DNA of 64,000 nt from Bugula neritina (Eukaryota > Animalia > Bryozoa), in assembly GCA_964035545.1 (NCBI GenBank), contig OZ037767.1:19360628-19424627 (forward strand). The letters run 5' to 3'. Each line of letters opens with the position of its first letter. The stretch's first letter is position 1. Below are positions 572 to 49,446 of this stretch, one piece after another. The position numbers and the translations under genes are program-made. Under the pieces are notes generated by a model, which had not been told where the DNA came from, made no database searches, and saw only the letters and a list, made by a program, of their open reading frames with translations.

Positions 572-776
572 TCTGTCCCGCATCTTGTGGACGTGGATGT
601 CAATACTATAACCACACAGTCTACCAGAGGGAGGAAGTGTGAGTTTATAATAGATTAGATAATAGAAGTTTTCTTCTTTTGTCTTAGGCTCACTGCATAT
701 CTGTATTGTAATTATTTTATTATATTAAATATATCATATTTTATTAACAGCATTTACAGACAACTTACCTCCATGA
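572..776 (+). CDS. pepA: 3' part of a secreted prepropeptide gene (exon 1 outside window). Exons 572-638 and 751-776: SVPHLVDVDVNTITTQSTRGRK|SFTDNLPP*. Truncated member or pseudogene
   Basis: ttcag/gtgagt and aacag splice sites; phase-1 junction; exon 2 homologous to pepB exon 2 and exon 3 homologous to pepC exon 3; TGA at 774-776 replaces the motif Gly while homology continues in frame (NQKTTHHRNYRKSNTLQDILRRIAN). Confidence 0.7.
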
Positions 777-4260: not shown

Positions 4261-5376
4261 GTGTGTACTGTATATATACATAGTATAATAACTATAATAA
4301 CATGAGACTGCATACTCTCCTCCAAGTCTGCAGTCAGTGAGAATATCTTGTGAAGTCCATAAAAATGTCAACGCATATGCTCAAATAAAATAAACTGATG
4401 GTTTTAACAAATTTCATTCAACATATTTGGCACTGATGATGAATATCAATAGTGAGAGTTAGTGATGTCACATGTATGAAAGGAGAATTAACATAGGAAC
4501 ATCAAGTAAACAACTATATAAGAATCAGCTAGTTCAAGCTTATGCGATTAGTGTGAAAAATTTGAGGGCTTCACTTATGAAGTTAGTGCATTTTATGTGA
4601 AAGCTTATACATTTATTTGTAATTAGTATGTTTTCTTCAAATTAATGTTATAGATGCAATAGCTCTCACTTAAGTAATTTTTTGTTACTAAAATTGAAAA
4701 GGTAAATTAGTGTGAACAGTTATAATTTAAGGCTATATATCAATGTTTGAACATGCAGTTGCAGCAACAATCTTTTTATGTAATAATGTGTATGCTAAGC
4801 ATTTTAAAATTTAAATCTCAAGTAACTTCTTTAGTATGCTTTAATTGGTTGCAACATTTTTGTAATGGAGATTCCCCAATAAAAATGGTAGAGTTGGTTA
4901 CTACGTATATCACATTACAACTGTAATATTATAATACATAGGAGTTATATAACTTTATGATTGATAAACTATATTAGTGGAAAGTTGACAAGACTGAAAT
5001 AGAATTAACCAGTAGCATTGTCAGCAGCAGCAGCCTAGGAAGTACAGCACTGACCTATGCAATGAGTCATGATTTTGAAGTTTGGCAGAGCTATGGGCAT
5101 TTGATTATAGTTGCTTCTGTGTTGCAACTAGACACTCTCTAACCATGTTTAGAGCCATAGCCTGTAACCTAATGACCATTTCATCATGAAATGAAGAATT
5201 TATATAAATAAGGTATCTAGTACTCTAATAGTGAGAGATTTATTATAAATATGTTTTAATTATACATAATAATTAATATATTAAATAATGACAAAAGTGC
5301 AGTTGCTGTGACATTTAGCTCAACAAGCTGTAGAATAGTATGTAGAGTTTAGTTCATATAAACGAACTCATTGGTG

Positions 5377-6049
5377 TCATGGTAACAAATACTTCCTCGC
5401 AACTTTTAGCAGTACTTCTCTGCTGGAAGCAGTGACTGTATCCAAATGCACATTTCCAGCTATTCCTGTCAAATGAGAATTATGTATAGCGTAATATTTA
5501 ATACATGTATTAATATACATGATATTATAAATACAAAGACTTTTAATATTAAGATATGTTTACAAAAAGTAATAAATTGCACAATTATAAGCATAATAGA
5601 CAAGTGTTGATAATTTGTGTTCTACACTGAACCTAGTTATAAACTGATCTCTCCTGTCTCGAATATGGTTTCTCCTACTGATGTTCAGCATGGATTTTCC
5701 CCCTAACTACAATACATACTATTATGTTACACACAACTATAAGTGTTGAAACATTTTTGTGTCATAATTTGAATAAATTAATATAAAATAGTTCTAATAA
5801 ATTTATAAATGAATGAAAACATGTTTTGAATTCACTGCTTTGTTGTCAAAATTTTATCAACCTAAAATTCTATATTATTTCTACTTCAAAAACTACCTTC
5901 CATTAGTTAGAATTATAAAAGCTTTTTTTTTAAATATAAACTATCAAGTATTAGTTCTACAAATAAACCAATATTATACTTACAAATCTTGCATTTGCAA
6001 TGCAGATGATAAGAAAGCAAAAAGTTATCAGAAACTTTATGATTTTCAT
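5377..6049 (-). pseudogene. pepP copy 1: MKIIKFLITFCFLIICIANARF|LGGKSMLNISRRNHIRDRR|GIAGNVHLDTVTASSREVLLKVARKYLLP*; exons 6049-5984, 5706-5649, 5465-5377; exon-2 donor mutated
   Basis: Hydrophobic signal exon with gtaagt donor; RDRR furin-type site; reading frames open, but the intron-2 donor reads ATCAGT where the paralog has GTCAGT. Confidence 0.75.
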
Positions 6050-6425
6050 TCTAAGAGTAAAGATTGTATAGCAGTTATCAAGACAGAAGAGTGAAAGAAG
6101 ATTTACCTCCAGCCAGGAGTGTAAGTTGTATACTGATACTGAAAGAAATGATGGCCACTCACATAGTATTATAATTAAGAAAATTGGCAGAGCAAATAAT
6201 TCTTTAATTCCTTAATTTTGTTAAGGATCCTATTAGTTACATAATGTTTTGTTATGTTAGCTGGAGTTAAACCTGAGTGCATCAACTGTTTATTATGTAA
6301 CAAAACAGACATAATTATAGGTGCCCTTGGGCTTGGCAGGTAAAGTTACCTAACAGAAATACAAACCCTAAACTCTTTTATCTGCTACTTCACCTTTTCT
6401 CCTCTTTGTGGTTTCTACTGCTATG

Positions 6426-7541
6426 GGTGCCATCCCAGATAGAAGGTTCTCAGTTAGATGCTAGGCTAAATTTCCCACTTAGAGGCTTTCCACATTTAAC
6501 TATTTCTTTATTTCAGTACAGCATATGTATTTTGTTTGTTTTTTTGCTTACCTCTTCTTAGCATTTAGTTATATTCTATTTTTGAAAGACTTAAAAGCAG
6601 AAGTTATTTGTAAATTAGGAAAATACCATCAGTATAATTTTAGGTTTGCATATTAGATCTTGTTCTGGAAAATTACTTATAATGAGTATTTAACTAAAAG
6701 TATTAGTTTTCATTGAAGTTTAATTTGTATAAAACCAGAACTAATTCCATTATTTTTCAAACAAAACAGTATACTGGTAGATTTCTGAATTTTCTAAGAA
6801 AAAGATTTACCATGCTAGTGTAATACTCTGACTGTATTATGGAAAGTGCTTAAACAGAAAGATAAAGTGCTTTTGTCTTTAGTTTTCATACCATCTAATT
6901 TTCAAGTTTAGTAGAGTAATAATTTTATAAATTATGAGTTTGTTTACTTATAAAGAACTGAAATTGTAAAAATAAGTAGTTATTGTGTGTTTAACATCAA
7001 TTACTAGTTTTAAGCACCCAATGCACTTAAAAGTATATAAATAGAGAGCATGTAACCTGTACACACATTTGTCTCTGAACTTCTCTTTGATATTGTGAAT
7101 ATCTCATTGACAAAATGAAACTCAAAATTCTCATATTTCTCTCCCTATCTATTATTCACTTTACAGAGACCAGACATGTAAGTATTGAACTTTTACTTGT
7201 AGTCTATAATATGTTGCTAACAAATTATACAATGTATAATAATGAAGCTAAATATTTTTTTAACTTTTCTATTACAAAGCACTTTTTCTTTTGAACATTT
7301 CTCGCTAAAGTTAAAGCACTTCTATGCAACTTTGATTTTTGTAACATTTCCCTGGAGCAAAAAAAGCATAAACACTTTTTGAGCTGCCTATCTCAATAAT
7401 ATTCAAATAAATTGCCTATAAAATATATATTGTACCAAAATAAATAAATGACGTCTAACTGGGAAGCGACCATGTGGGAAGCTTCTAAGTGGGAAATTTA
7501 GCTTAGCGTCTAACTGGGAAACGTCTATCTGGGATGACACC
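6426..7541. mobile_element. Left-end (6426-~6495) and right-end (~7390-7541) fragments of a small TIR DNA element family, inverted relative to each other
   Basis: ggtgccatcccagatagaaggttctcagttagatgctaggctaaatttcccacttag is the near reverse complement of 7480-7541; related pieces at ~48820-49240 and ~50495-50622; TA flanks. Confidence 0.65.
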
Positions 7542-8229
7542 GTATTTTTATTTCTGCTAAGCTCAATGCGCTTAAAAACTGCTAGAATTTAAAAGTATAG
7601 CATACTTTAATATTGCTCCTTAAGAAAAGTCTTGTTCAACTAAACGTTTTTATACTTTTGATTTGCCAATTAAATTTTGCATCCTCACGTCAAAAAATCA
7701 ATTCTTTTATAAAAAGCTTTCTGATATTTTAAGAGAATATTGAGTAGCAGTATAAACCTTTAAATGCTGTTTTTAAATAGCTCATTTAAAGATTCATTAG
7801 GCAAAATATTTTGGCCTATAACAAAAACATCATAAATAATTACCCTTTCTGGCTACATTTTATTACTTAAGAGTTATGCTACATTTCATTATTTAAGAGT
7901 TGTGTTTCCTTATCAGAATTACTTTATAATTCTCTATTCTAGCTAGTGCCTCATCTTGTGGACAGAGATGTCAATATAACCACACAGTCTACCAGAGTGA
8001 GGAAGTGTGAGTTTATAAAGGATTAATAATTAGAAGTTGTCTTCTTTTGTCTTATTTCCTTGCATACCTGTGAGGTAATTATTTTATTATATATCATTGT
8101 GAAACATTAATGGATAATAATTTTACAGCCCACATTGGAGGTAATGCTCCTGGTGGAGAACCTACTGTGATTCACCCAACATATGAGGAGCTGCTAGAGA
8201 TATTGAAGATTTACTTGCAAGCCCCTTAG
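7115..8229 (+). CDS. pepB copy 1, 75-aa prepropeptide: MKLKILIFLSLSIIHFTETRH|LVPHLVDRDVNITTQSTRVRK|SHIGGNAPGGEPTVIHPTYEELLEILKIYLQAP*; exons 7115-7177, 7943-8006, 8129-8229
   Basis: Canonical GT-AG sites, phases 0 and 1 give one open frame; TATA-like tatataaa at ~7034; frame conserved in paralog at 50915-51932. Confidence 0.85.
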
Positions 8230-8785
8230 TGTCTTATTATAATATCTTATAAGTTATACTGCAAAAGTATTTTCATTATAATATTGTTCATTTAATTATA
8301 ATAATATTCTTATTACAAAATACGCTCTCGAATTTTCATCAGTTATTATTTGAATTTCTCTTGAAAACTTTTATTTGTTATCTTAGAAAACTACAGTCTT
8401 TTTATGTTGTTATTGGTGAACCTCAAGGCCGTAACAATAATGACTCATAACTGCATCTCATCTGTTTGTCAACTTTGTCATTTGGTCAATTATAAATAAA
8501 ACTAAATTACCAAAAACTTCATTATTCTGTTAGCTGAATTTATTCTTAAATAATAAATTTTCAAGCATTGGCTTTGTGCATCCTAATTCATACATAACAG
8601 ATCTGTGCATAGAGTCTTTTTATGGAAGCTTGGCTTTTATCAAAAACTAGCATTAGATAATTTCAAGATTGCAGAATCTGTAACAGTGAATGCATTTCTT
8701 CATGGCATAGCGCTGAAAGTGGATATCACACACTCAAGTATTTTATAGACTGACATAGTAGATACTAGTAAATCACTGCAATTGA

Positions 8786-10042
8786 ATGGCTAGGATAAGA
8801 AATATGGTTCTACTATTCCTCTATCTGGCTGAATTCCACATCCTGAAAGTAGGACTTGTAAGTGCTTATGATATATTAAACATAAGGTTTAGTATATGGT
8901 ATGCTTTATTGTAATATAATGCCAAACATTTTTCTAGTGCTGATTTGTAACATTTGCAATTCCAATCTTTACATTTGTAGAGCTGAATAAGGAAACTTTT
9001 TCTTTAGTATTAAATATGTGAACTGCAGTTATATGTGCCAATGTTATTCAAAACAATTCGTTAGCAGCCAACCGGAGTATATTGATTAAACTTTCACTGC
9101 TGATTCAACTTTTCACAAATTTTTTTTCAAGTAATAATAAAATTTTTATGTATGACTGCAGAGAAATTGAAAATCAAAATTTTCTAAGGCATGGAGAATT
9201 ATCAAATTGCACTGAAAATAGTGAGTAATATGAAAAAAGCCTTTACAAGAGTCATTGAAAAGGCAAATGTTCAAAAATCTGTTTCATTCTGGTTAAAATA
9301 AATTTATAATCAGCAATTTAATTATGAGCAACTTGTGGTAAGAAGTTTACACCAGTTATGTCAGCCAACAGCATTTAACAGCCCATATTCTGAAAAACTT
9401 TCTTAGTTTAAACTGATGATAACCATTTTATTTGAATAATAATTCTACAAAGCCTGTTACTAATTTCAGATGACAACCAATTTGGGAGATCCAAACACAG
9501 GGATGAAGTCTGGAAGTTTCAGCTTAACCAGACTTGGTGGCTGTAATCAGATGCTAGTGACTTGTCCAGTGATAGCTCCTTTTACAATGATTAAACGAAT
9601 CAGAAGATGTAAAACAAATAATTATATTACTTTTCACTTTTCATTTTACTACACTTTGAGACCTTAATTATGTCACCCTCATGGTATATTGTACTCATAG
9701 GTCTCAAAGGGATACAAATTCACACTTATATATACTTTTCACTTTATTTCTATATTTTTCCTATAAATAAAAGTTTATTTTTACAATTTTAATTTTGACA
9801 AGTTTTTAGTATGGCAATTACATACATAAAATATTACTTTAAAAGCTAAATGGAAGTAGTACAAAAGCTACCTTAACTCTGTTACCAGTACTCTATAGCA
9901 AAGTTATTTTAATCTTGTTCTTTTAACAGCATTTACAGACAACCTACCTCTGGGGATTCAGCCAACTACACATCGCAGAAATTACAGGAAGTCAAGCACC
10001 TTACAAGATATTTTGAGAAGAATAGCTAATGGTAGATACTAG
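8786..10042 (+). CDS. pepC copy 1, 107-aa prepropeptide: MARIRNMVLLFLYLAEFHILKVGL|MTTNLGDPNTG...PFTMIKRIRR|SFTDNLPLGIQPTTHRRNYRKSSTLQDILRRIANGRY*; exons 8786-8857, 9470-9608, 9930-10042
   Basis: Exon lengths 72/139/113 fit phases 0 and 1; RIRR site at the junction; exons 1-2 same length in the paralog; intron-2 donor (gtaaaa) and signal peptide weaker than in other members. Confidence 0.75.
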
Positions 10043-10486
10043 TTTAGACGGAGGATACTTTTAGTTATACAAAATGAACAATAGAAATATTTTTATTTTG
10101 CCGTCTTTTTAGCTTTTTAAAAACAAAATAATGCTTAAATAAAAAATTGTGATGTGATGTACAGTCGTTATTTTGTTTTGGTACTCAATATACTTCATGT
10201 GGTGTTTGTGTATGATATATAAGGACAAACTACTATTCATTGATGTGAATCTGAATACAGCTTAGCCGTTGAAAGTAGCTTCTCAGAGCAGATAGTAACA
10301 AATACAGATGTTTTTACTCTTTTTGAATCTGAATTAAAAGTAGAATAGAGATAAAATTTTACCACTGCCGCAATGCACATAAATTTTTTTTTTTTTGTGA
10401 TTTCTCAAAATGAAATTTAATAAAATACAAATAGCCGCCCATAACATTATAGAAACAACTTTTTTCCAATATAAATTTATTTGACA

Positions 10487-11607
10487 CTAAAGAAAATAAA
10501 AAAGCCAAACAAAACTGATCAAAACATTATATTGAGCATGTAAGCATGAGATAGCACTAGAATTTGGCCTTTGATTCTTCTGTGTAAACCCAAAAGGTAC
10601 GTTGCCTGTATGTGCTGCAAAACGCATTAAATTAAGTACATCAAACATTGAAATATTATATTACATGATAATTCATCATAATAATATGTGCTTATATATA
10701 ACAGAACAAATTAAACATTATAGGTGCTCATCACCTTTGTTATTGAGTAATAATTCTTATATCTACCAGGTAATATCATATCTACAGGTAATCTTATATC
10801 TAACAGGTAATATCATATCTAGAGGTAATCTTACATCTTCGATTTCGACCAAATATTGCAGGATACGACAGATGCCACACTGGAATCACTTTCTCCCATA
10901 TTCCTACAGGTGGCAATTTGTTCTCATTGTTTGTTGAGTTGCTTTCTTTTAATTCTGTTTCAGTATTTTGACAAGCGCAGGAACTTAGTATTGTCTAAAA
11001 TCCATAAAAGTATTCATATAACAATTTTTCAATAAATTCTACAATTTGAAATGTACATATAATAAATATATATTAGAGCACAAAATATAAATTTAGCTCA
11101 AGAAACAGTAAGGTAATAATTCTTTTGTCAAATTTTGCACAAAATCACATGCATCAGGCTTGATTCAGCATTTCCCACACTCATGATGAAATTATTTGAA
11201 AACTTTGGTTGATTTTTTATATTTTGTTACAATCAGCTTTCATAAATTGCAACATTTTATATACTTTTACAATTCAGCACTATGGAAGGTGGTACTGTAC
11301 GAAAGACGCTCTATTAAACAGCTACATATATAAAAAGCTAGCGCAATTGGATGTCCAAAGAAGCCAAAAGTTAGAAAAAAAGCAGTTTTTTCAATAACGA
11401 GTTTGTTTAAATTAACAACTTTAGTTGCTTCTAAGCTGCATCATTTTAACTACTCTATTTGAATTTATTAAATAATATTTAAAATGAAAGGAAATAAAAG
11501 CTGATTACTTTATTGAGAATGAAATAAAATGAACTCACCCTGTTAGCCTGCACGGCAGAGAATACAATTGCACAGTGACATAGTAACATAAGCCTGTTCA
11601 CCTTCAT
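10487..11607 (-). CDS. pepD copy 1: MKVNRLMLLCHCAIVFSAVQANR|TILSSCACQNTETELKESNSTNNENKLPPVGIWEKVIPVWHLSYPAIFGRNRR|SHTGNVPFGFTQK...; exons 11607-11539, 10994-10835, 10614-10487; C-terminal tail frameshifted
   Basis: Canonical splice sites; RNRR at the phase-1 junction; net ~17-nt loss after the motif shifts the ancestral helix (QILVLSHAYMLNIMF*) out of frame. Confidence 0.75.
10760..10834. repeat. Short tandem repeat (~18-19 bp unit atctacaggtaatatcat) in pepD intron 2; paralog at ~54448-54544
   Basis: About 4 direct copies visible. Confidence 0.7.
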
Positions 11608-12180
11608 ATTAGTAGTGACTGTAATTTCTTTTATACTGTAACATTAAGGCTGAGAGTAAGTCTCTTGTTGTAACCATTCTGCTCTAGCTACTGTTTTATA
11701 TAGCAATGGTGTGTACTGCATATCTCGAGTATTTTAAATTCCACACTTTAGTAACCCCAAGTGGTGCTAGTTCTACGGATTTGTCTAACATTCTTAAACT
11801 ACAAACAATAGATTTTCCCTAAAAGCTGCATTTCCTGTAGCGTGGCGTTGCAAAGCTTCTCTGCTATCAATGCAGCAGGCAGTAGAGTCAAATGCTTATT
11901 AACTTATTCATGCACAATGACAAATGACTACTAATTATATAATCTGACATACCAACAATAATAATATTAATAAGTCAAATTATTTGTAATTCTACCGAGC
12001 GTCTAGTAATTATTACATTTATTTTGATACCATACATTTTGGGAATAAGCTATGAGCTGCGATAATCAGAAGTTGTCTTCCCTTGGTACATTATTTTCCT
12101 GTTTGTACTATGATGATGAAATATCTTTGATTTTACAAGTTATGTTTTATATAGCACTGTTTTAGTAAACACAGGCATGT

Positions 12181-12365
12181 GAGAAACCCCTGATAGAAAG
12201 GGTTTTTGTTAAAACGGGCTAAGGACTTATTTAAATGAGGCACAGGAGCAATTATGACTGGATGCTCTTCCTAACATCACCAATTGCTTTTGTCGGCAAA
12301 CGCATGACCTCGTGGTTACTAGGCAAACGCTCTAACCCCTAGGGCCTAGATCACGACTGCCCCCT
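12181..12365 (-). mobile_element. tRNA-derived SINE-like insertion
   Basis: Absent at the paralogous site (~55930); minus-strand head ggggcagtcgtgatctag...ggttagagcgtttgcctag is tRNA/A-box-like; related head fragment at ~23975-24015. Confidence 0.55.
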
Positions 12366-14559
12366 TGTTTAAATATGATATAGACGTTGCAATAACCTGG
12401 AAATTTAAATGTGTTCCATATAGTATATTAGTCTTCATACTGCCATTGCTGCTTTCAATTGCACTATTGGAGCATTCTGAACTCAAAGTATTTCCCTGTG
12501 TAGCTTTTTGTTTGCTTTTTAAGCCACGGTAGCTGTTACTTCTTATTATACAAAACAAGAGGTGTCTGTAAAGTATACAACTTAAACACATCCAAGACTA
12601 AATGACTTTGATGAGAGAACCCGACCCAATACTTTCTTTTCTTATTTTGATTAGTAAAAATTATTTGTACTGTACATTCGGTAACGTAATAGCTACACCA
12701 GTTGTTACTTTCTTGCTTTGCATAATTTCGTCAGCAGTTAGAAATTCAGAGTTATCTACCCATATTTTTTGTTGCACCATGGTAATCTTCTCTCAAAAGC
12801 AATATATCGGTATATTTGTCAACTTATTCTGAAACAACTCTTATAATAATGGTGAGAATTCTACATTCATGGGTGACTCTAGCTGATGTTGTGAGCTACT
12901 AGATAGGCCTCCTTTTTTACCATTTTCGATCACAAATATATATAGTTATAGCAAAACAATCCTCTTTTTTATATAATCTAATATGAAATCCTATCATTAT
13001 TGAAAATTTTACAGATAGTTTATCAACTTGAAGCAATGGCTACTTAATACTCACATTATAAGTAAAATGTATATGTATATATGTCCTTAGAATGTGATTT
13101 TAGATAATAATATTATCTATTTCTATTTTTATAGTCATATAAATTTCATTGCTGTATAATATACGTTATACAGCAATGTGACTTATAACTATATACACAA
13201 TATCTTCTTATATATTTTTATTAAATGCCAACACTTTGAATTTTACTCATAGACTGCAAAGTTATATATTAACACGATGTGGAGACTATATGGGAATTGT
13301 CCTTTTATGTCTAAATTAGGCATCTGGCACCCCATGGAATTTAAACAAACATTAACTATTTACGCGAATTAATTTAAAGTATTTCATAAACTAAGACAGT
13401 TGTAATAGCAAGTGGCACTAAATTATGAAAAATTGTGTTTTGATAAGTGCACAGATGCAGGCAGCGCATTTATCACATGGCAGAAAGCTATACTGACTGG
13501 TGGAAAGACAAAAAAAACCACATTGATACAAGCATAGAGTTTGAACGCCAGTAGCCTACTCAATTAGCATTGCCAAAAAGATCTAGTATTGAAAACATGA
13601 CAATAATGGGTTAAATTTAGTTGACCAAACTTATATGAAAACAACAAATTACCTGTCAGGAGTCGTCCCCCTTCTATCTTTAGTTTAACTGACAATAAAC
13701 TTCTAAACTGCTTGCAAATCACAAACAATGACTCACGTATATATTGTAATATTATAGTGCATAATTAAAGTTAAAGGCTGAAAAGTGATGCATTTTATTG
13801 TAATATTTATTTACTGATTTCTGTAAAAACATTGTAAATGATATATATATAAACCAGTCTTGCCAACAGTTCTAGCCTTCAGTTAAAAGAGTAGCAGGCA
13901 ATGGATAGATTAAGAGCCAATAAAATTAGAGCTTTTTGTATGTCCCAGACAGTTTCTAAGAGCTCTAAAATACAATCACACCAATCAGTGAAACTGCAGT
14001 TATAAAGACATTAATTGAAATATACAAGATAAAACTATTCAACTGTGTTCATGCCAATAACACTTGGCATACACACAACATAACAGAATAAATGATATAA
14101 ACACAATATTGGCAGCAACCATAAAAGCAGTAAAATTCTAAAAGGAAGTTCTCCATAACCTATAATATTTAGATTATAGAATAATATTTTTAGAAAGTAA
14201 GGGTTAACCAAAAGACATGTTACATAGTAAAGCTGTTTTATTACCCAGACTTATATGTCATATACAAAGAGAACAGCAGCAATTGGTTGAAATGAAAACT
14301 AGTAAAAATATCCTAATTTCATCTTCAACACTCTAGTGTTTATATAACGATAGCAGGAAGTAAATGTATTACTGTGCAGTCAAGAGATAGCCATATTTCT
14401 AGTGAAAGCTATAGTAGTTTTTCATCACGTTCTAATTAGAACCATCAAGTTCTCTGTCAATATCGTGTTACAAAAGCTAAATGCATAGAAAATATGGGAA
14501 GAAAAGATACAAATACTGTACATAAGTAGATTATTGTTTGTATTTTCCTTTAGGGATCT

Positions 14560-16165
14560 TTACTTTGTGGCCTGTAATATATTTTGTAATATTTCTAGCA
14601 ATGCTTCCTTCCCTGCAGGCTTTCTAGCGAATGGTGGATTGCCAACATGGGAGTTGGCTATAAGATAATTTCTTGTTTGAGCAACAATAATAATAAAGAT
14701 ACAGTGGAATTGTAAATATTTTATGCTATATTTTAAGCAAAAGTATAAAGAACCTTGTCTAGCAGGTTTTGTGGTACGAGGAGGGGGGCGGGGAGGGGGA
14801 GCTGGAGACCCATCCATTCCAGACATCATAGAAATCACCAAGCTATCTTTTTCCTTTAGTTTAGCAGTGCCTTCAGATTGCTTTATTGCTTCTAGAACTC
14901 TGTTAACCTTTAGGATCTGGTAAACAACAGAGTTCACCATATTCATATTTTATTCATTGCAAGGTCAAAAAACTCATGGTACTCTTTTCGATAAATGGAG
15001 TCAGTCTAAAGCATTTTGCATAAATGTAGCTTCTAATTTTCAGCTCTCAATTCGTTTTAAACTGAATGAAAACCAAGTAAATAAACACTAAGTAAAGAAG
15101 GTTTAACTTGCAAAAGTAAGTAAAAATATATCTATAAGCACACTGAATATATTAAATCATTTGATCTTACATTTGCAAATATCTATAAAATAGATTTCTG
15201 AATGCCAGTATATGAGGTGTCTGCATAATCACTCTAAAAATAAAATTATATAATGTGGTATGACATAAAATAATAATAACATATGAATATTATGATAAGG
15301 TGTGTTATAAGATAATATACTATAATTATCATAGGTGTCATAATGCTAGTATTTAATTTTTGTTTCAGAGTCTGGAAAAAAGTTATTTGAATGCTGTATT
15401 TAAATTTTTAAATCCAGTTCTGTAAAAAATTATCTCAGTCATAAATAAAACTAAAATGATAGATTTCTCTGTCAGAGACAATGGCTCATAATGGCAACGA
15501 AAACTCGAAATGACAGACATACTGAGAATAGAGTGTATTTAGTCAGGAACCAACCAGTGTCGTATTATGAGCCAGCAGTGATGGATGCTTGCAGGTCACA
15601 CCACGCACTCCTGAGCATATCTCGCAGTTAGGGGGCAGCTAAAATGTCCCCTTATTGGAATAGCAACTATTTAAAAACTTTCCGGGCTATTAAGTATTAA
15701 GAGTAGCATATATACACAAAAAACCTGACTAAATTTCTATAGTCTGAGGTATACTACAGTCTACACTCTACAGTTATGTTAGAGTGAAACTTGAGCAAAG
15801 TCAATTGGACATATGGTTAAATAATATATAGGGGGTACTGTTTGAGCACATGCTTATAGGGTGGGCTTTATATAAGCATATGCTTACAGTTTGAGTACTC
15901 TATACACATATGCTTACAGTGTGGGTTTTCGCTAAGCATATGCTTACAGGATGAATATCCTTTAATCCTGACAAATCTATAATTTGGAAATGTATACCTA
16001 ATAACATGGTGTTATAATTAATACTTCTTTCTAAGTGGTGCACACCTAGTTTAGTAAATCATGTGAAAAAAATGTAAAGGAAAAAATTTCAATACTGACA
16101 GATTTCCCATGTAAGTTGCAGACGGCAAATAAACAAAGTAGCATCATTCGAAGTTGAGTTTTCAT
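14560..16165 (-). pseudogene. pepF: four-exon long-form member; exons 16165-16100 (MKTQLRMMLLCLFAVCNLHGKS), 15233-15171, ~15005-14754 (Pro-rich), 14657-14560 (ANSHVGNPPFARKPAGKEALLEILQNILQATK*)
   Basis: Same 0/0/1 phase pattern and 63-nt exon 2 as pepG; exon 2 has an in-frame TAG (15185-15183) and exon 3 appears 1 nt short; last exon intact. Confidence 0.65.
15835..15950. repeat. ~30-bp minisatellite (core agcatatgcttacag), about 4 copies
   Basis: Direct repeats at 30-bp spacing. Confidence 0.7.
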
Positions 16166-16689
16166 AATGAAGAAACTAGATATTTCAGCACAAACACATG
16201 GAGCTGTTGAACTGCTGCAGGAAGAAGTGTGACACATAAACCAATTATTCTTTCTATTATAGCATGCCATTTAGTGACCTTGGCTACATTCTCACTGTAT
16301 ACATGCTGCCATACTGCAATCATATACGCTGCCATGCAACTTCCTGTTATGATGTAATTGACATATAATTCACATGAATGGAGCGGAGCTAATAAATGCC
16401 TTATCCTAAATATACTACAGCAGCTCAAGCTTAGGGATTATAATGCAAGTATGTTTATCTCAAGTAAAAAACTAGGAAATCTTCAAATATAATATTACTG
16501 TACTTTCTGTCAATTATATGCTGTAACAACAACTGATTTTAATGGTCATGATCATATAAAATATTAGTGTAACCTTGAGATTACCCAGTAACCCCTGTGG
16601 TGTATTGAGTACTGTAACAGCTAGCAGTTTGAAGATTGCTATGTTTTGAGAAAGCAACTCCAATTAACAGTTTTCGTTGGGAAAATAAT

Positions 16690-17165
16690 TTTTATTTGGT
16701 CTCCGCCGGTCGATTTGATCATGGAATGCACCCTATCATTGGACTGAGCAGCGGAGCCTGTGGCTGTGCCGACCAATGTGTGCGTGGCAGTCCTTGTCAC
16801 AAAGGTCACACTTGCAAGTGGACTCCGGTCTGTTGGTGACGGCCTGAGCCCTTCTGCGTGCTCCTTTTAGCCGCTGCATTGAGAAGTTTTTTTTCCCAGC
16901 TGTGAAATGGTATTTTAGTTTGCTCTTCCAACTCATGCAATCAAATGTGACATCTTCCTAGGACGCTGTGTCAATGCCGATAGCCGTCATATCCTTCTTG
17001 CAGGCATCTTTGTAGCGCTATATAGATTATCCTTGGAAATGTTGTGGGTTGAGCATGACCAAGCCAGCGCAGTCTGCGTCCCCTGAGCAGGGTAAAAACG
17101 CTTATGCTTCAATGATTGGGCTTATGCTTCAATGATTGGCGTCATCCCAGTTGACTTTGCTTCAA
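16690..17165 (-). mobile_element. 3' fragment of an RTE-clade LINE
   Basis: RYKDACKKDMTAIGIDTAS*EDVTFDCMSWK...CDLCDKDCHAHIGRHSHRLRC matches the RTE ORF C-terminus with its terminal Cys/His knuckle; absent from duplicate copy 2. Confidence 0.8.
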
Positions 17166-17924
17166 ACTAACCATGTGACATTGAAGTCTTTTATTGTATC
17201 ATTTATATCTATCACCCATATTTAGTGTAGCATAGCAGTTCTTTTGTTATATAACACACAGTTGCATCTACAGCTCAAATTTGTATTCGGAATCTGGCGG
17301 AATTTGCCTCAAAGTATAGATGAAAAAGCTGGACAAACATGTAATAATATATGTTATGGAAAATTCTATAATTATATATAATATGGTTATTGCTATAATA
17401 CTATGAAGAAAATTTGATGTATGTGTTTCAACGTGCAATCACTCCATACTGCGTAAACACAACTTCATGAAGTAACAACACACTAGCTGCTATAAGTATA
17501 TCAGCAATTAAATTATTTAGTTTAATACATTTACATATACGAATATTATAACAAGTGCAACAGCTATAGTGCAAGGCTAATTGTTCACCTCATTCAAGGT
17601 AGAGTAACTTATGAGTTTTATTTAGTGCTGTGTGACCACTGTAGGCATTATTCAATAAGTTTAATAATGTCTTGAATGATACTTGAAGACATTTAACTAG
17701 AACTATAATAATCGTTCACAGAGCTGCAATGTAGTTCACCAAAGTAATGTTTTTTATTGAGTCATGCCTATGATCATATTTAAGGATATTTCTATGTGAG
17801 AACAAAGCGAATGAGTCAATGTGATGAGTCAGCCTTCAGACTACTGTCTCCTTAAATAGGCAGTATGTACAGTATCAGTCATACAGTGAAGTAAGTCATC
17901 TATATGTAACTAACAATGTATATC

Positions 17925-18020
17925 AGCTGTTATTATATAATACACAGCTGCTATTATATAATACACAGCTGTGTATTATATAATATAAAATTGTTACTAC
18001 ATATAATATACAATTGCTGT
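17925..18020. repeat. 21-bp minisatellite (tattatataatacacagctgc), shorter paralog of 60685-60860
   Basis: Direct repeats. Confidence 0.7.
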
Positions 18021-20083
18021 CGTATATGAAGCTGTTAGTGTAAATCCCAAACAGCAAAACTTTGCATGGATGTGGTTGGTTTTGCTTATAGATGTAGTAT
18101 TTCATCGAACCTCACCAGGTCAATGAAGGTAGTTTAAATATATATGAACTTATGTTCAATATACAACATTATAGGGGTGCATGTATATATTATGTTTTAT
18201 AAATCCAAAATACTAAAATTTATAAAATACTTAATGTGCCAATGATTTGTCAAAAAGTTGCCAATAACTTGTCAATTTACTTAAAAGCAAATATTTTAGT
18301 TAATGTAAATGTATTATATAATTCAAAGAATAATGCAACTACTAATATGCTAGCTAACAACAATAGTGATAATATTTTAATACTTATAAAATATATTTTT
18401 ATTTCTTTTAGTTACCCATATAGAATTCGTTGAAGTACTTTATCACAGGCAACTTTTCATGTTAGTAGAATATTATAGCATTGTATATCAATATTTTTAC
18501 AAAAAACTACAAATCTAAATAACATGTAAAATACTTCATGCATGATTTCATTTTCAGCTTCTTTGACAGAACTGCAAAATTCAGCTAGTCACAGTTGGGA
18601 TAATGCCAAAATCTTTACATAACTTACTCACTTGCATAACTTACTCAACCAATGGCCATTACAGATCTAGCCTTGCATGTGTCAGTTTTCTATCGAGTGT
18701 TACTTATTACAGAAACCCAACACTGATCTTAGCTGCAGATTTATCTGTAAATGACTAATTTTATATCTCCTCATTTCAACATTTCAGCCAATGAAATACG
18801 CAGAATGCTGTTCTGTAACTTACAGCTGCATGACCTCATAACGTTTAAAATGCATAGTCAGTAGTTAGAAATATCTTTTCTAATATGCTAATGCATGTTT
18901 ATATCATGTACTCAGTTTGGCAAATGAGCTGTATTATTATATGCTCCCTAAAGTAAATATTTACTTTATGAAACAGATTAAAAACAAAATTCTTTTTATA
19001 TGCAGCCTAAAATCTTGCCACTAAATTCAGCTCGGTAGCAAGTGTATAAAACATTATGCTTTTCCTAAATCTGTACACCATGAGAGTTAATAGAAACCTA
19101 AGCTAAAAATCAACATCATTTATTATAAAAACATTAGAACCGTTTATAGCAATAGTAGGTGTTGGCAACGTCACGCTTTGCATTTCCTATGAAATGATAA
19201 TAACCGACTTGCCATAATACTCTTCACCAAATAGCAGCTATAGAGTTACTATTGTTATTATAGCCATCTATCTGTGGCATACTGTATTTCTGTTCTCCTA
19301 TTAGCATTTCACGTGGAACCCAACATGTGTACAGCAACTGTTTTAGAGGTTATCTCCTCACAAAACTGAGCACTATGGCACAAAGTATAGAAATTTTCCT
19401 GTCACAGCATAGAATTTAAAAGATGCATAAATTAAGACCAGGATAATCCAACATATGGTTAGTAAGTCACTGTGCTGCAATAATAGATTGGGATTACCCT
19501 GGTTTACAATTTTAATTAGGTATTTAATTTTTTATTTATACATAGACATATTATTTTATCCTTTTTCCTGAAAAGCTAGGATTATCTATTACTCATTTCA
19601 CCTAAACATGGACAAATTATAATAACCAATCATTTCCCTTCAACATTTCCTTATAAACATCAATCTCTTTACACACCATCTGTATATTTGATGCACTCAC
19701 TGCATCTATACTATAGTGTATGCAAAGCTGGCTAGCTTGCAGTGTGTGTAATATTAGACCACATTTACATCATACAAATATTTAGCAATGCACGCTTCTT
19801 AATAAAATGATGCATTTATGCTACTAATTATGTATCAATCTATCACTTATGAATAGTTAGAATATTTGTATATGAGCTGAATTTGTGTAATAAATAATGA
19901 TTAAGTACATTAAAAAATTCAATCTAGTTAGCCTAATTTGGCTGCAGATGTTGAGTTTTATGAAAAGCATTTGAAGGTAATTACGACTATGACAATAGAC
20001 CAATGTATACAGTCATCATACTTGATGTCTACAGTTATTGTACTTATATTTACGCATATATAAATATATACGTGTGTGTTTTT

Positions 20084-20644: not shown

Positions 20645-22195
20645 AGTATAACTGACAATAAACTCCTAAAATGTTTGCAAATCACAAATGATGGCTCATG
20701 TATAAATTATAATATTAGAGTTGTATTGGTATGCCACCAATCCTTAAAGCTTTCTTGCTTTAACACACTCATCAAAAGCTATCATTAGCTGGCAGTGCTG
20801 TTGCTTTAGTTTACTGTCCTTAGCACAGCACAGGCAGTTGTTCTAATCAAACAGCCAAAGAGGAGCATTTACAACGTTATATGAGCACACAGTTATACTC
20901 CAATATTTACACTCTGAATAGACCATCGGTTTTGACATTGGGATGGCAAAGAACTTTATCTATGCATCAATATTGTAAGTTTTACTTGGATTATAATAGC
21001 TAATGTCATTTTGTTTGGATCTGTGCTGTTTTCATGGTGTTTCTCTGACTTTTGATTTAAATTGTTACTTATAGCAGTTTGTACAATTTCTATTTTTCCC
21101 ATTTTTCCATTTGAGAGTCAATAAACTTGAGAACCTGTTGCCAAGTTGGCTAATAGATAACAAATATTACACTCTAAGTCATCCAGACACTGACACAAAA
21201 CCGATACAATAGTTTATAAATAAAGTTAAAGGCTGAAAAGTGATGCATTTTATTGTAATATTTATTTACTGATTTCTGTAAAAACGTTGTAAATGGTATA
21301 TCTATAAACCGATCTTGCCAACAGTTCTAGCCTTCAGTTAAAAGAGTAGCAGGCAATGGATAGATTAAGAGCCGCAATAAAATTAGAGGTCCTTGTATGT
21401 CACAGACAGTTTCTAATCTAATACACTGAGCTCTAAAATACAATCACACCAATCACTGAAACTGCAGTTAAAAGAAATCAATTGAAACATAAAAGAAAAA
21501 ACTGTTCCACTGTGTTCATGCCAATAACAATTGGCATACACACAACATAACAGACTAAATGATATAAACACAATATCGGCAGCAACCATAAAAGCAGTAA
21601 AAGTCTAAAAGGAAGTTCTCTATACCCTATAAGCTTTAGATTATAGAATAATATTTTTAGAAAGTAGCGGTTAACCAAAAGACATGTTACATAGTATAAA
21701 GCTGTTTTATTACCCAGACTTATAAGTCATATACAAAGAGAATAGCAGCAATTGGTTGAAATGAAAACTATAGTCAAAATATCCTAATTTTATCTTCAAC
21801 ACTCTAGTGTTTATATAATGATAACAGGAAGTAAATGTATTACTGTGCAGTCAAGAGATAGCCATATTTCTAGTGAAAGCTATACTAGTTTTTCATCACG
21901 TTCTAATTAGAACCATCAAGTTCTCTGTCAATATCGTGTTACAAAAGCTAATAACGCATAGAAAATATTTAAAGGATTAAGATACAAATATTTTACGTAA
22001 GTTGATTATTGTTTGTATTTTCTCTTAGGATCTTCCCTTTGTAGCCTGTAATATCTTTTGTAATATTTCTAGCAATGTTTATTTTATTGCAAGCTTTCTA
22101 GCAATTGGTGCATTGCCAACATGAGAGTTGGCTATAACATAATTTCTTGTTTGAGCAAAAATAATAATAAAGATACGGTGAAATTGTAAAAATTA
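20645..22195 (+). repeat. Local duplicate of ~13680-14723, interrupted by a ~500-bp insert (~20720-21218)
   Basis: taaagttaaaggctgaaaagtgatgcattttattgtaat and following ~950 bp collinear with 13765-14723. Confidence 0.85.
22025..22131 (-). pseudogene. pepF2: isolated last exon ANSHVGNAPIARKLAIK*TLLEILQKILQATK
   Basis: Paralog of 14657-14560; premature TAA at 22081-22079; upstream exons missing where the (GT)n array lies. Confidence 0.75.
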
Positions 22196-22197
22196 TG

Positions 22198-22804
<607 letters not shown>

Positions 22805-23084
22805 TTTTAGGCATTGGAAGACTTTAAGACTAAACCATATATTCTGTAATGATTTATTTTATTGATACAAGTACTCCTTCTAATGCTAAATAATAAATAA
22901 GTAATGTTACTGAATAAAGAAAATAGGCTAAAAGGCTGTTAAAAATGCTGACTAATTTATTTTCCAACTGGATCTTCCGTTGAATTCTGTCGTGGAAAAA
23001 CCAGTATGATGGGAAAGTCCTACTATGAACAATGCTGATGGTGAGCTCTGTATTGAATATACATAGGGACAGTTGGTTTCCCTA

Positions 23085-26209: not shown

Positions 26210-27108
26210 ATGGAGATTAGAGGCCTGATATTGTTTGCTTTGTCAGCAATCTTCTACATAGAAGCCACCTCGGTGAGTTTCAACAGGTAGATTATAGAAA
26301 TATTCAAACTTGTCACTATAGCAATAAAAATATTTTCATCTCTCAACTTGAATTTGAATAGTTTTTATTTCTTTTTCAGGATCCAGTTGTGGCTACCCTG
26401 AAGTTAGATATAGGGAAGTTAATTCCTTTATTTCTCTCACAGGTGAGTTACAATACTCTTTGATTTGAAACTTTAAAAAGTGCAAAAAGTTAAGATCTTA
26501 GTAAACATAGCAGCTCTCTTAAAATCAATCTGCCATAGAATGCTGCATTCAAAACAAAATCATAAGTTGAGGAAATGCTTCAATTTGCAGAGTTATATAA
26601 TTGCTTTTCATAGATTTTAAAGAACTCAACCACCTTAGAAGTGGAGATTAGAGTCAGTGATTTTCAATTAAAGAATGACGACAGTCAAGTTTCATCAACA
26701 ACTAGTTCTTTGGTTGACCTTACGACACCGGCAGCACCTGTAGGACCTCCAGCCCCTCCACCACAGCCACAGCCTCCACCAGCATTGAGCAGATCTCTTA
26801 GATCAGCACCAACAAATATAACTAGCCAATGTGAGTATGCAGTGTATAGCTTTACATGCATCTAAGAAAGTTTAAGCTTTTTAATGATTTGACGCAGCTT
26901 TAGTAAAATTGTAAATAAATTTGATTTTTGCACAGATGGTGTGTACAAGTATTTATATTAAAATTATTAGTGTTTTCACAGTCATTGCAATATATAGTCT
27001 ACATATTTTCTTTTAGCAAAGTCATTTGTTGGAAATCCACCAATTGGAAGGCGAAGACGCAGTCTAAAGAACAACAAAAAATTGAAAATTCTTTTTGCCG
27101 GTTTCTAG
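26210..27108 (+). CDS. pepG1, 144-aa secreted precursor: MEIRGLILFALSAIFYIEATS|DPVVATLKLDIGKLIPLFLSQ|ILKNSTTLEV...PPALSRSLRSAPTNITSQ|SKSFVGNPPIGRRRRSLKNNKKLKILFAGF*; exons 26210-26272, 26380-26442, 26614-26830, 27017-27108
   Basis: Consensus splice sites (gtgagt donors), open frame across four exons, signal peptide, Ser/Thr/Pro-rich spacer, G-RRRR motif; indels versus the duplicate preserve frame. Confidence 0.9.
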
Positions 27109-28569
27109 AGCTGCTGATGACTGAACCACGTGGCAATGAAATAAAAATGCTATATATAGTCTATAGAATATTCTAGTGAAACTATCAAGTTGCAGTGAAT
27201 ATATTATAGTATTATTTATTTCAATCAGCAATATAAACAATTCAGTGTAGTTTAGGCTACTGTTGCACATAATATTTTGGTTTATTTATTTAACCGGTTT
27301 ACTATTTAAGCAAACATATATTATTATATAGCCTTCTAGTACATATTATAGTTTCTTGCTATTTTGTATTAGCTGAGCACTTTAGGCATAGGTTTTATGT
27401 CTTATTATGTGATTTATTTATTATGCCAAATTTTGTAAATAAAGTATTACAATTACCACTAAAAATAGCTTGTAAATAAATATATAAGCACAGCCCATAC
27501 TTAATCATCGTATATTATGCTCAAAGTTATATTATGCTTATTTGAAAGAAGCATTATTTTGTCGCATCATAAATATGTATAATTCCCTCATTATTCATAT
27601 TGCAAATATATACTATGCGACTACTTTGCTACCTGTCTATAAAAGATGTAGTATGTAGTTATAATCTATTGCACGATTAGAAGTAAGCTGTTTATAATAA
27701 ATGTGAACGCACAAACTGCAACCACATGTAACTCACAGGGCATAATATACAAAACTTTTTTAGTAGAAAAGTATTGCAAGTTCTAGTAGAATTTATTATC
27801 ACAAAAGTTGTCTTACTTTAAAATGAAGCAGTTGGGTTTCAAATGCAAATACCAGATCAAAAACAGTTAATACAAAGTCAAGCCAAGCATCTGACTTTCA
27901 CTGCTTTTCCAAGCTTCTCATTCTGTAAAAATGAAAAATCCATTTGATGTAATGGAAGTACAGTGTTTAACAGTAGGCTATTTGTTTTATATAAAATGGT
28001 GTGCAGGTAAACAGTGGCTGTGTATAATATTTAGAGTTACCTGCTTTCTTCTCAGCATGTTAAAGAGTTGAGTCGGTGGTTATGGGAGAAACAAAACTTT
28101 TTTTTGGATATGCAGGGAGCTTCTTTATTATAAAATTCTTTCACCAATCAAAAATACATTTATTTTCTAGTCTTCCTCATACAGCTTATTTCTCATATAC
28201 AATTGAATAACCCCATAGAAAGCAAACTATTTCAACATCCATAAGCTGCCATGGCACGTTGACAAATCGTCCACACAGCTAAATAAAGCATCATTTAAAT
28301 ATCAGGGTATTCTATAATAGTTTAAAATGCAAACATTTTTTTATTATTTTTGTATATATAATAGTTTTATGTACGTGCATCTTTCTACCACCATATATAT
28401 AGTCCAGATAATGCAACATCTATATATAACCATGTCATTAGAAAATGTATATTTATATTATTAACATTTTTTCATTGCCATTAAGTAGAATTGCTACATC
28501 ATTTACAAAGTTCCCAGTTTAAAAGATATTGTCAGAAAGACATTGTTCTTCTGCATTCAGGTATTATAT

Positions 28570-28812
28570 ATGTGAGACGTAGGTGAACAATAGGTGAAAA
28601 GTAAGTGAAAGGTAAAAAGATGTAGGTGAGATGTAGGTGAGATGTAGGTAAGATGTAGACCTTGTGAGATGTAGGCGAAATGTAGGTGAGATGTAGGTGA
28701 GATGTATGTGAAAGGTATGTGAGAGGTAGGTGAGATGTAGGTGAGATGTAGGTGAGAGGTATAGTTGAGAGGTAGGTGAGATGTAGGTGAAAGGTAGGGA
28801 AGATGTATGTGA
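28570..28812. repeat. 11-bp tandem repeat (gtaggtgagat)n; paralog at ~33080-33315
   Basis: Roughly 20 degenerate copies. Confidence 0.9.
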
Positions 28813-30581: not shown

Positions 30582-31527
30582 ATGGAGATTAGAGGCCTGA
30601 TATTGTTTGCTTTGTCAGCAATCTTCTATGTAGAAGCTACTTCGGTAAGTTTCAACAGGTAGAGTTTAGGAATATTCAAACCTGTCACTATAGCAATAAA
30701 AAGATTTTCATCTCTCAACTTGAATTTGAATAGTTTTTCTTTACTTTTCAGGATCCAGTTGTGGCTACCCTGAAGTTAGATATAGAGAAGTTAATTCCTT
30801 TATTTCTCTCACAGGTGAGTTACAACACTCTTTGATTTGAAATTTTAAAAAGTGCAAAAACTTAAGATCTTGTTAAACATAGCAGCTCTTTTAAAATCAA
30901 TCTGCCATAAAATGCTGCTATCAAAACAAAAGCATAGGTTGAGGAAAAGTTTCAATTTGCAGAGTTATATAATTGCTTTTCATAGGTTTTAGAGAACTCA
31001 ACCACCTTAGAAGTGGAGATTAGAGTCAGTGATTTTCAACTAAAGAATGACGACAGTCAAGTTTCATCAACAACTAGTTCTTTGGTTGACCTTACGACAC
31101 CGACACCAGCAGCGGCAGCACCTGCAGGACCTCCAGCCCCTCCACCACTGTCACAGCTTCTACTAGCATCAGCACCAACAAATATAACCAACCAATGTGA
31201 GTATGCGGTCTATAGCTTTTCATGCATCTAAGAAAGTTTAGGTTTTTTAATGATTTAATGCAGTTTTAGTAAAGTTGCAAATACTCAAAAACTCGTTAAA
31301 ATTTTAGGAGGGACCTAGATTTTTATATTTATAGCTTACAATTGATTTTTGCACAGATGGTGTGTACAAGTATTTATATTAAAATTGTTAGTGTTTTCAC
31401 AATCATTGCAGTATGGTTTACATATTTTCCTTTAGCAAACTCATTTTCTGGAAATCCACCAATTGGAAGGCGAAGACGCAGTCTAAAGAACAACAAAAAA
31501 TTAAAAAATTTTCTTGCCGGTTTCTAG
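30582..31527 (+). CDS. pepG2, 142-aa secreted precursor: MEIRGLILFALSAIFYVEATS|DPVVATLKLDIEKLIPLFLSQ|VLENSTTLEV...SAPTNITNQ|SNSFSGNPPIGRRRRSLKNNKKLKNFLAGF*; exons 30582-30644, 30752-30814, 30986-31196, 31436-31527
   Basis: Tandem paralog of pepG1 with intact splice sites and frame. Confidence 0.9.
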
Positions 31528-39423: not shown

Positions 39424-40419
39424 ATAGTGAAGCGAGACTAATGAGCACTCAAATACAAGGCATATCGAGATACAATAAAAAGTCAGGAGTGTATAAATTA
39501 GAAAGAATGTGGAAGGGGGACTATGTTTTTCAACAAGCTATATAACATAAACATGAATTGGCTTTTGAAAAAATTAAAAAAGTATATTGGAGAACATAAG
39601 TTTTTTTATTTTTCATACTTTTTCTGTTCCTGTGACATTCAACCTGTTCGAGCTACCAGTAGAACATTGTTCATATAGAGTGTAAAGCACCTGGCAAAGA
39701 GCCAGAAACTCAAAAAGCATGACCTTAAACTAACTGTGAAGACCCAGGCCACTGTGGGAGCCGACACATCCGGAATAGCCAAGGTGTCTGCCCACCAAGG
39801 GAAATGGTCCGTGAGCACCAGTATCCAGGTGTTCCCTCTGGCGGATAACGACATAGGCCCAATGAGGGCCACCGCCACTACTTGCCACGGTCGACCAGCG
39901 TACAGCCGGCATCGACCAGTGGTTTCCATAAGGTGGCTATACTTACTAACTTGGCAGACCTCGTATTGTCGTACTCGCAGCCGTACATTCCGAGTCATTC
40001 CGGACCAGTACTAACGCAGCTGCAGACACCTGATGACCTAACTGGCTCCAACATGCTATTGTTTATAGGTGTCCCAGATCAGGTCACGTCGGATGGCCCG
40101 TGGACAGACGACGCAGTCTCTTTTGCTGATGATTGTCAACTGTTAGCGTGAGCATCAGGAGGCCGTCAGGACTGACCTTGAGGGAATCCCAGCACTGACA
40201 GAGGAGTTGGAATTCAACGTCTCCCTGCCGATGCTGTTCTTTGTTAGATCATCAGCCTTCCTTCTTGGCTCGAAATATGTCCTCATACAGTGTGGGGTTG
40301 GCACGAAGTGCCTGGACGTCATCTGGGTACGTTTCGGTCCAAAGATGGCCGTGCTCCCACCGATAGACGGCGCCCTTCCTTAACTCTGTCGTGATGTCAA
40401 GGCGAGCGGGTCCCCCGTC

Positions 40420-44734: not shown

Positions 44735-44924
44735 TTTATAATCTACAAATTGTTTACATAAAGTTAGCTATTTTGGTTTTCCCAAGTTTATTCTACTATT
44801 TTTGAGCTGTCTATAATATTTAAAGTGCGTACTTTTGAAACAGATAGTGTAATATACTTACCTTGTAGTGTGATTGTGTTGTAACAGTAGAAAAATTATA
44901 TTATATGTGTCTCTTTTGTTACAG

Positions 44925-49240: not shown

Positions 49241-49446
49241 CACTTCATCAGGAAATGGAGAATTTATATAAATATATAAAGTATGTAAAATACTCTAATA
49301 GTGAGATATTTATTATAAACATATTTTAATTATACATAACAATTATTATATCAAATAAGCAGAGAAGTGTAGTTGCTGTGATATTTAGCTCTACAAGCTG
49401 TAGAATAGTATGTAGAGTTTAGTTCATATAAACAAACTCAATGGTG

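Follow-up and report, generated by a model that had tools for sequence, protein, structure and literature searches.

A fast-turnover family of putative secreted-peptide genes sharing one last-exon cassette in the bryozoan Bugula neritina

What do the small, repeated genes of one locus in the bryozoan Bugula neritina encode, and why do a predicted cleavage site, a short conserved motif and an exon border fall together in them? We analysed a stretch of 64,000 nucleotides (assembly GCA_964035545.1, contig OZ037767.1, here C3, positions 19360628-19424627), called the window below, from an animal genome of 216 Mb and 30% GC. An original prediction, made from the letters alone, had set a basic cleavage site and a motif of about nine residues exactly on a phase-1 exon junction in several genes around window positions 5377-11607, and had taken the motif for the new N-terminus of an active ligand. 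We found that the four genes of this interval belong to a larger group: a motif scan and a hidden Markov model (HMM) built from twelve last exons (alignment A2) detect a single last-exon cassette that recurs at least 21 times along about 94 kb of C3, beginning some 3 kb ahead of the window and ending 91 kb past its start. On balance, and for the reading as a whole, we favour a family of small secreted pro-peptide genes that lie in a tandem, partly inverted and recently re-duplicated cluster and have this cassette in common. Their products would most likely be extracellular signalling peptides of the neuropeptide, hormone or cytokine type. We regard the undescribed, fast-turnover secreted-peptide family itself as genuine.

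The cassette begins with a core of 8-9 residues, S-[F/H]-x-G-N-x-P-x-G, followed by a linker and then by a block of the LLEIL type. When eight sub-lineages are compared in pairs, the nine core columns are on average 48% identical and the tail 19%. The original prediction had staked itself on the motif codons being better conserved than their flanks in a larger set of paralogues, and they are. The core Asn is kept in all 21 copies of this genome, although its codon is AAT in some and AAC in others. Synonymous changes are likewise seen at the conserved Gly and Pro, and such variation points to past selection on the amino acids of the core. Far from being a passive flank, the tail carries a second conserved block, which is predicted to be helical. 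Two Leu positions of its L-L-E-I-L-type block are held in 7/8 and 6/8 sub-lineages, and an AlphaFold2 model of the c3 last-exon peptide places a helix at residues 18-30 (predicted local distance difference test score, pLDDT, about 90), with the core modelled as flexible. The charge of the tail runs from strongly cationic to strongly anionic among copies.

How is this cassette joined to the rest of the gene? A search of both strands for R-x-[KR]-[KR], then any one base, then GT[AG] gave eight family donors (638+, 8006+, 9608+, 10835-, 46747-, 51708+, 53305+ and 54545-), and 24-320 nt downstream of each lies an AG acceptor that opens on the motif in the matching phase. In these three-exon short forms, the exon before the cassette ends in RxRR or RxRK plus one base, and the split codon encodes the first residue of the motif: Ser from T/CA or T/CC, and Gly from G/GA in c2. 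RIRR (c4), RNRR (c5, c11), RARR (c14) and RDRR (c2) match the furin consensus R-x-[K/R]-R. Splice signals are canonical and intron phases consistent across the gene models. Of the four family genes in the interval 5377-11607, c3 and c4 appear intact and c2 and c5 are damaged; phases agree at all their junctions, and each has a short, hydrophobic, signal-like exon 1:

5377-5465, minus strand: c2 last exon, GIAGNVHLD type, with a phase-1 acceptor, a stop at 5377-5379 and a tail that aligns with the LLEIL-type block
5649-5702, minus strand: c2 exon 2, ending in RDRR plus G; the next bases (5648-5647) are AT, and the donor is lost
6107-6164, minus strand: putative c2 exon 1, hydrophobic and phase-compatible; ATG is followed by TGA in both duplicates (c2 and c11)
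7115-7177, plus strand: c3 exon 1, predicted signal peptide, donor GTAAGT; the duplicate c12 retains the ATG and the frame
7943-8006, plus strand: c3 exon 2, ending in RVRK plus T; donor GTGAGT, phase 1
8129-8229, plus strand: c3 last exon, (S)HIGGNAPGG motif and predicted helical tail; stop at 8227-8229
8786-8857, plus strand: c4 exon 1, predicted signal peptide
9470-9608, plus strand: c4 exon 2, ending in RIRR plus T; donor GTAAAA, phase 1
9930-10042, plus strand: c4 last exon, (S)FTDNLPLG motif and tail; stop at 10040-10042
10487-10614, minus strand: c5 last exon, (S)HTGNVPFG motif; tail frameshifted relative to the duplicate c14 (17-nt indel)
10835-10994, minus strand: c5 exon 2, ending in RNRR plus T; donor GTAAGA
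11539-11607, minus strand: c5 exon 1, predicted signal peptide; donor GTGAGT, phase 0

Every junction listed in the original prediction exists and its phase matches, but three of the copies it drew on are defective. The RDRR copy (c2) reads G/AT where a donor should stand. In the RNRR/SHTGNVPFG copy (c5) the junction is present but the tail is out of frame and ends in a hydrophobic run that replaces the LLEIL block of the family. The RGRK/SFTDNLPP copy (c1) also has its junction, but it stops after PP and its exons 1 and 2 are mutually out of frame. Short forms carry a furin-type or dibasic site before the core and no cleavage signal directly behind it; in none of the four genes of the interval is the core followed by Gly and a basic site or stop.

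A second type of gene presents the same cassette differently. Four-exon long forms lie at 14.6, 27.0 and 31.4 kb in the window and at 65.6, 70.5 and 91.0 kb beyond it. Their exons encode, in order, a predicted signal peptide, a 21-residue DPVVATL module, a Pro-rich stretch that starts with LEVEIRxSDF, and the cassette. At the DNA level, the short forms resemble long forms minus the six bases that code for two extra residues. The long forms of the window, and a fragment related to them, are as follows:

14560-14946, minus strand: c6, with a LEV/Pro-rich exon, a last exon (14560-14657, SN-SHVGNPPFA-RK-...) and, between the two, an intron that by chance stays open in frame
22049-22132, minus strand: c7, which duplicates nothing but the last exon of c6 and is broken by a stop after the motif and before the helix
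26210-27108, plus strand: c8, four exons: signal peptide (26210-26272), DPVVATL (26380-26442), LEVEIRVSDF/Pro-rich (26614 to about 26830) and SK-SFVGNPPIG-RRRR-tail (27017-27108)
30582-31527, plus strand: c9, four exons, with SN-SFSGNPPIG-RRRR-tail

At 14.6 kb we found no DPVVATL exon, so that four exons for c6 are an inference. The c7 last exon is immediately preceded by some 600 nt of (TG)n/(CA)n microsatellite (22195-22830), the cause of a spike in GC skew, in the place where the rest of that gene should lie. Each c8/c9 repeat unit also holds an array with an 11-nt period (28558-28772 and 33074-33299), which gives rise to an artefactual long open frame on the minus strand.

The long-form models agree with independent gene predictions. 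The closest database proteins are two B. neritina gene models, P0002 (EB796_007243, 148 aa) and P0003 (125 aa), both from one GenBank contig, whose exons are 76-95% identical to those of the window. They were predicted by AUGUSTUS and are spliced in the same way, with the motif two residues after the split codon, and so bear out the claim that long forms carry it two residues into the exon. Transcriptome hints were used in annotating that genome (PMC7576161). The core of seven long-form-type copies, P0002 included, is directly followed by Gly and then by a stop (window-equivalent positions 77702 and 85356, beyond the window), KR (window-equivalent 90961) or RRRR (27022, 31441, 70501 and P0002). 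Gly-stop, Gly-KR and Gly-RRRR are textbook contexts for C-terminal amidation. Proprotein-convertase P domains are encoded at several loci of the genome, which also has copper type II monooxygenase domains, although these are not specific for the amidating enzyme.

These two gene types answer the question of the coincidence. The meeting of site, motif and exon border is one inherited intron position. It is not tied to cleavage, because long forms keep the same phase-1 intron without a dibasic site before the core (at most a single Lys). The agreement among copies reflects common descent of paralogues and is no set of independent coincidences. As for a new N-terminus acting as the ligand, the idea is plausible for half of the family, in which the putative site ends where the motif starts, and is contradicted in detail by the other half, in which the core stands before amidation signals.

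We propose the following mechanism. The signal sequence would direct the proteins into the secretory pathway, where a proprotein convertase would cut the short forms behind the RxRR or RxRK that closes exon 2, releasing a peptide of 29-37 residues with the core as its flexible N-terminus and a helical C-terminal half. In long forms, the chain would be cut at Gly-KR or Gly-RRRR, or would simply end at Gly-stop; a carboxypeptidase and an amidating enzyme would then trim it to a chain whose amidated C-terminus is the core, as in ...SFVGNPPI-NH2. In both sub-families the core would be exposed at a chain end, at opposite ends, and since it would be N-terminal in short forms and C-terminal in long ones we propose it as the recognition element. 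The phase-1 intron also let paralogues exchange exon cassettes, as in c1 and c10 (below). Tentatively, and with rather modest expectations, we extend this to a bryozoan-restricted peptide signalling family in which sister genes present one 8-9-residue core in opposite ways and the phase-1 intron serves as the recombination joint between pro-region exons and cassettes.

Where might the long forms have come from? Two head-to-head genes at C3:22526000-22533000 (22.53 Mb; loci L018 and L019), one of them encoding the protein P0006, carry DPVVATL and IEVHIRASDF modules and no cassette; the P0006-type locus also lies on a GenBank contig (L017). Because P0006-type genes share DPVVATL/IEVHIRASDF but not the cassette, their sequences suggest that the cassette was joined to the front of an older secreted-protein gene. 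The pair also suggests a larger family of secreted proteins that are rich in Pro or in His/Gln.

The cluster turns over rapidly, by birth and death of copies. The block that holds the c2-c6 gene set (5200-19500) is repeated at 49270-63200, with 82-97% identity across aligned blocks and a stated size of about 44 kb. Since then, nearly every gene pair has lost the use of one copy, whether through loss of a donor, a nonsense codon, a frameshift or a deletion, and at least 8 of the 21 copies of the family are damaged. The duplicates and the remaining fragments of the window are:

572-776, plus strand: c1 chimera, c3-type exon 2 (RGRK plus T at 638) and c4-type last exon (751-776), SFTDNLPP then TGA; its exon 1 lies just before the window
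46600-46878, minus strand: c10 pseudogene, the c1 chimera in inverted orientation; its motif exon has lost 1 nt and its intron has collapsed to about 24 nt
49447-55326, mixed strands: second copy of the c2-c5 block, holding c11, c12, c13 and c14
c11 (minus strand, duplicate of c2): RNRR, intact donor G/GTCAGT, exon 2 at about 49719-49772
c12 (50915-51932, plus strand, duplicate of c3): intact
c13 (52477-53708, plus strand, duplicate of c4): premature TAA in the tail
c14 (54155-55326, minus strand, duplicate of c5): 17-nt deletion in exon 1 plus further indels
58543-58590, minus strand: c15, relic of the c6 duplicate; helical tail only, motif gone

The lineage of c2 and c11 may have been dead before the duplication, because ATG-TGA heads the only phase-compatible first exon of both. 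The c3/c12 pair keeps all three exons and splice sites on both sides, and its exon 2 encodes an identical protein with two synonymous changes only. Between c3 and c12, and between c4 and c13, exons 2 and 3 diverge by 3-6.5%, versus about 8-15% in the surrounding DNA. Each of the old, mutually inverted copies c1 and c10 combines exons 1 and 2 of the c3 type with a last exon of the c4 type, the phase-1 intron being the joint, and has a stop directly after the 8-residue core. They are direct evidence of the exchange of exon cassettes between paralogues.

Repeats of other kinds also occur in the cluster. Between the two duplicated blocks lies a remnant of a Ty3/gypsy-type retrotransposon (39600-44750, minus strand, about 50% GC), with its reverse transcriptase (RVT_1) and RNase H domains split across several open frames. 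A short interspersed repeat of ~70-90 nt with TGGGAA-type units, possibly an element like a miniature inverted-repeat transposable element, is found in introns and spacers (7450-7541, 6426-6495 inverted, 48840-48897 and 50567-50612).

How far does the family extend? In the whole-genome HMM search, every match with E < 1 fell inside C3:19.36-19.45 Mb, and none elsewhere in the 216-Mb genome. In protein libraries the exons were searched singly and the only full-length queries were the database proteins P0002, P0003 and P0006; by "lineage-specific" we mean that nothing was found in the libraries so searched. An exhaustive HMMER search with P0002 against 1.84 billion representatives returned P0002, P0003 and P0006, all "hypothetical proteins" of B. 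neritina; two further matches, P0004 and P0005, were taken as Pro-rich noise, P0005 after inspection and P0004 without it. Eight exon peptides and the three full-length proteins matched no Pfam family at E up to 10, the CRF profile included. A profile search of PDB gave chance-level matches only and no peptide-hormone chain, and the ESM Atlas gave scores of 0.87 or less, no related cluster and a disordered model (pLDDT 0.48). The word searches that had any result returned only gene-model or metagenome proteins; the one with the c6 open frame led to a frameshifted gene call on a related contig from the Joint Genome Institute (JGI) and to nothing else. A metagenome scan with the c3-type alignment matched 85 stretches, none of them real, and a 45%-identical match to c4 exon 2, on a contig of 44.5% GC and without the family motif, was set aside as spurious. 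The motif had no match in the main text of the lophophorate neuropeptidome paper. Thus, to judge from these searches, the family is found so far only in the B. neritina complex. Two other sources can be compared with our locus. The separate assembly GCA_010799875.2 is only 80-89% identical to it in non-coding DNA, which makes the genome of the window a member or close sibling of the B. neritina complex. Host-derived contigs in the JGI metagenomes 3300003318 and 3300002729 (loci L009 and L010), 86-91% identical to the c6 region, come from a related Bugula genome and could serve as a source of orthologues for the cluster.

Several observations weigh against signalling peptides as the products. 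Asn, claimed to be invariant, is so within this genome but not beyond it: in the c6 counterpart on the related JGI contig the core Gly and Asn are lost (Asn to His) while the helix is kept. Compared with GCA_010799875.2, the last exon has 5 synonymous and 9 nonsynonymous codon changes and is less well conserved than the DPVVATL exon (7 and 2). The last exons of c3 and c12 differ by three nonsynonymous changes, one of them in the core, and one synonymous. RVRK (c3, c12) and RGRK (c1) place Lys at P1, a poor residue for furin, and in most long forms no N-terminal cleavage site is evident. Broken copies are numerous. Word searches with short-form exon pieces (c4 exon-2 frame) matched no database protein. 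Finally, classical neuropeptide genes do not usually turn over this fast. These comparisons make the constraint on the cassette real in the long term, with the core above the tail in identity and varying synonymously, but weak in the recent past, with 5 synonymous versus 9 nonsynonymous changes between assemblies.

Could the peptides act in host defence, as pheromones or in some other ecological role? The active parts would then be the pro-regions and the cationic or amphipathic tails, such as the +5 tail that follows RRRR in long forms, and the turnover would reflect an arms race or recognition dynamics. We hold this to be unlikely, even though the birth-and-death pattern (segmental duplication, inverted copies, chimeras and the damaged copies) agrees with it, as do the lineage restriction, the predicted amphipathic helix and the many nonsynonymous changes between assemblies. 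What is best conserved is a short, neutral core of Gly, Asn and Pro and not a pattern of charge on the helix, since tails of either strong charge occur; the Gly-stop copies have no tail at all, and the amidation-type architecture is typical of signalling peptides.

Another proposal, compatible with the signalling reading and less probable again, concerns origin: SFVGNPPIG would derive from the B. neritina FDSIG-like peptide SFDSIGNGPIGL, of the pedal-peptide/orcokinin type, by a small deletion and a reduction to one copy per gene. The BnFDSIG-like peptides share S-F, G-N and P-I-G in the same order (PMC4990251), and a gene coding exactly the published peptides lies on the same chromosome-scale contig, at C3:27.77 Mb. 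That gene, however, is 8.4 Mb distant and consists of many KR-flanked copies in one exon, with no Gly-amide signal and no pro-region or tail in common with the cluster. The Asp typical of pedal peptide and orcokinin is missing from most core variants, and the 7-residue match was chosen after the fact, with no meaningful E-value. We keep this likeness only as a lead on origin.

Least probable is that the long forms are secreted Pro-rich structural or matrix proteins in which the DPVVATL/LEVEIRxSDF module is functional, the cassette a dispensable pro-piece or sorting signal, and the short forms decaying by-products: the constraint on the DPVVATL exon between assemblies (the strongest seen, 7 synonymous versus 2 nonsynonymous), the presence of its module without cassette in the two genes at C3:22.53 Mb, the long, low-complexity Pro-rich exons and the breakage of several short forms all suit such a view, but c3 and c12 retain three exons, splice sites and an identical exon 2, core amino acids are kept with synonymous variation across sub-families whose pro-regions no longer align, and a mere sorting tail hardly explains why seven copies have Gly-stop, Gly-KR or Gly-RRRR right behind the core.

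Two narrower ideas were also rejected. A glycosylphosphatidylinositol-anchor signal, considered for the conserved Asn and the tail, needs a small omega residue, a spacer and then a hydrophobic C-terminal stretch of about 15-20 residues, but the tails are amphipathic or charged, two copies stop after the core, and only the frameshifted c5 tail is hydrophobic at its end. Cleavage after Asn by legumain was set aside, as Pro, Ala, Val or Leu follows the Asn.

Almost no bryozoan peptide signals have been characterised, and B. neritina is a model for larval settlement and fouling. Only 11 peptide precursors have been reported from this species (PMC4990251). The cluster offers synthetic peptides that are cheap to test (SFVGNPPI-NH2 and the c3 and c4 last-exon peptides) and candidate orphan ligands. 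It reveals no new principle of processing. It is a clean example of how a lineage-specific peptide family grows, through tandem and segmental duplication, phase-1 cassette exchange, switching of processing signals and rapid pseudogenisation.

How does the family compare with known systems? The original prediction had likened the motif to the tethered ligands of protease-activated receptors and to insect ENF peptides, and neither likeness held: there is no Cys in the intact last exons, no ENF motif and no Pfam or PDB match. What the cluster would have in common with the ENF cytokines (GBP/PSP/PP) is a matter of analogy, namely an active piece at the extreme C-terminus of a small secreted precursor and a functional N-terminus made by proteolysis. 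ENF cytokines have 23-25 residues, an N-terminal Glu-Asn-Phe and one disulfide; the cluster peptides have neither that start nor the cysteine pair, nor any sequence similarity. The ligands of class-B G-protein-coupled receptors (CRF/DH44/ELH, PDF, calcitonin/DH31) resemble the modelled short-form peptides, in predicted secondary structure only, by a flexible, conserved N-terminus and a C-terminal amphipathic helix after an RxRR-type site at the precursor C-terminus. The cluster peptides are shorter (29-37 residues, against ~40 for CRF/DH44/ELH), their tails end without Gly, so that the helix end would not be amidated, and they give no Pfam or PDB profile match at E = 10.

The FDSIG-like precursor of B. 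neritina (Wong et al. 2016; PMC4990251) comes from the same species group, and its peptides are of similar length, start with S-F and continue with G-N and P-I-G in order. This type is marked by an F-D-x-I/L ... G-x-G core; the cluster and the BnFDSIG-like peptides have the pattern S-F...G-N-x-P-I-G in common, but most cluster copies have no Asp and the match is too short for statistics. In the FDSIG-like gene (C3:27770400-27771000, L012), a single exon holds nine or more KR-flanked copies, of which six match the published peptide exactly; there is one core per cluster gene, not the tandem copies of pedal peptide and orcokinin precursors. FDSIG-like peptides are not amidated, and their precursor has no helical tail, DPVVATL or LEVEIR.

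Like amidated neuropeptide and hormone precursors, the cluster genes encode a predicted signal peptide and furin-type or dibasic sites, and a short conserved peptide near the precursor C-terminus is directly followed by Gly-KR, Gly-RRRR or Gly-stop; genes for a convertase and a copper monooxygenase are present in the genome. The cluster differs in having no sequence relation to any described family (Pfam, PDB, Atlas, 1.84 billion representatives), a single core per gene with canonical sites on both of its flanks in no gene, and about 20 fast-evolving copies versus a conserved single gene. The cluster also recalls the CLE-type families of plants, which are large and locally duplicated and combine a signal peptide, a hypervariable pro-region and a short Gly/Pro/Asn-rich motif near the C-terminus. 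There the family architecture is alike, in another kingdom and by analogy, not homology.

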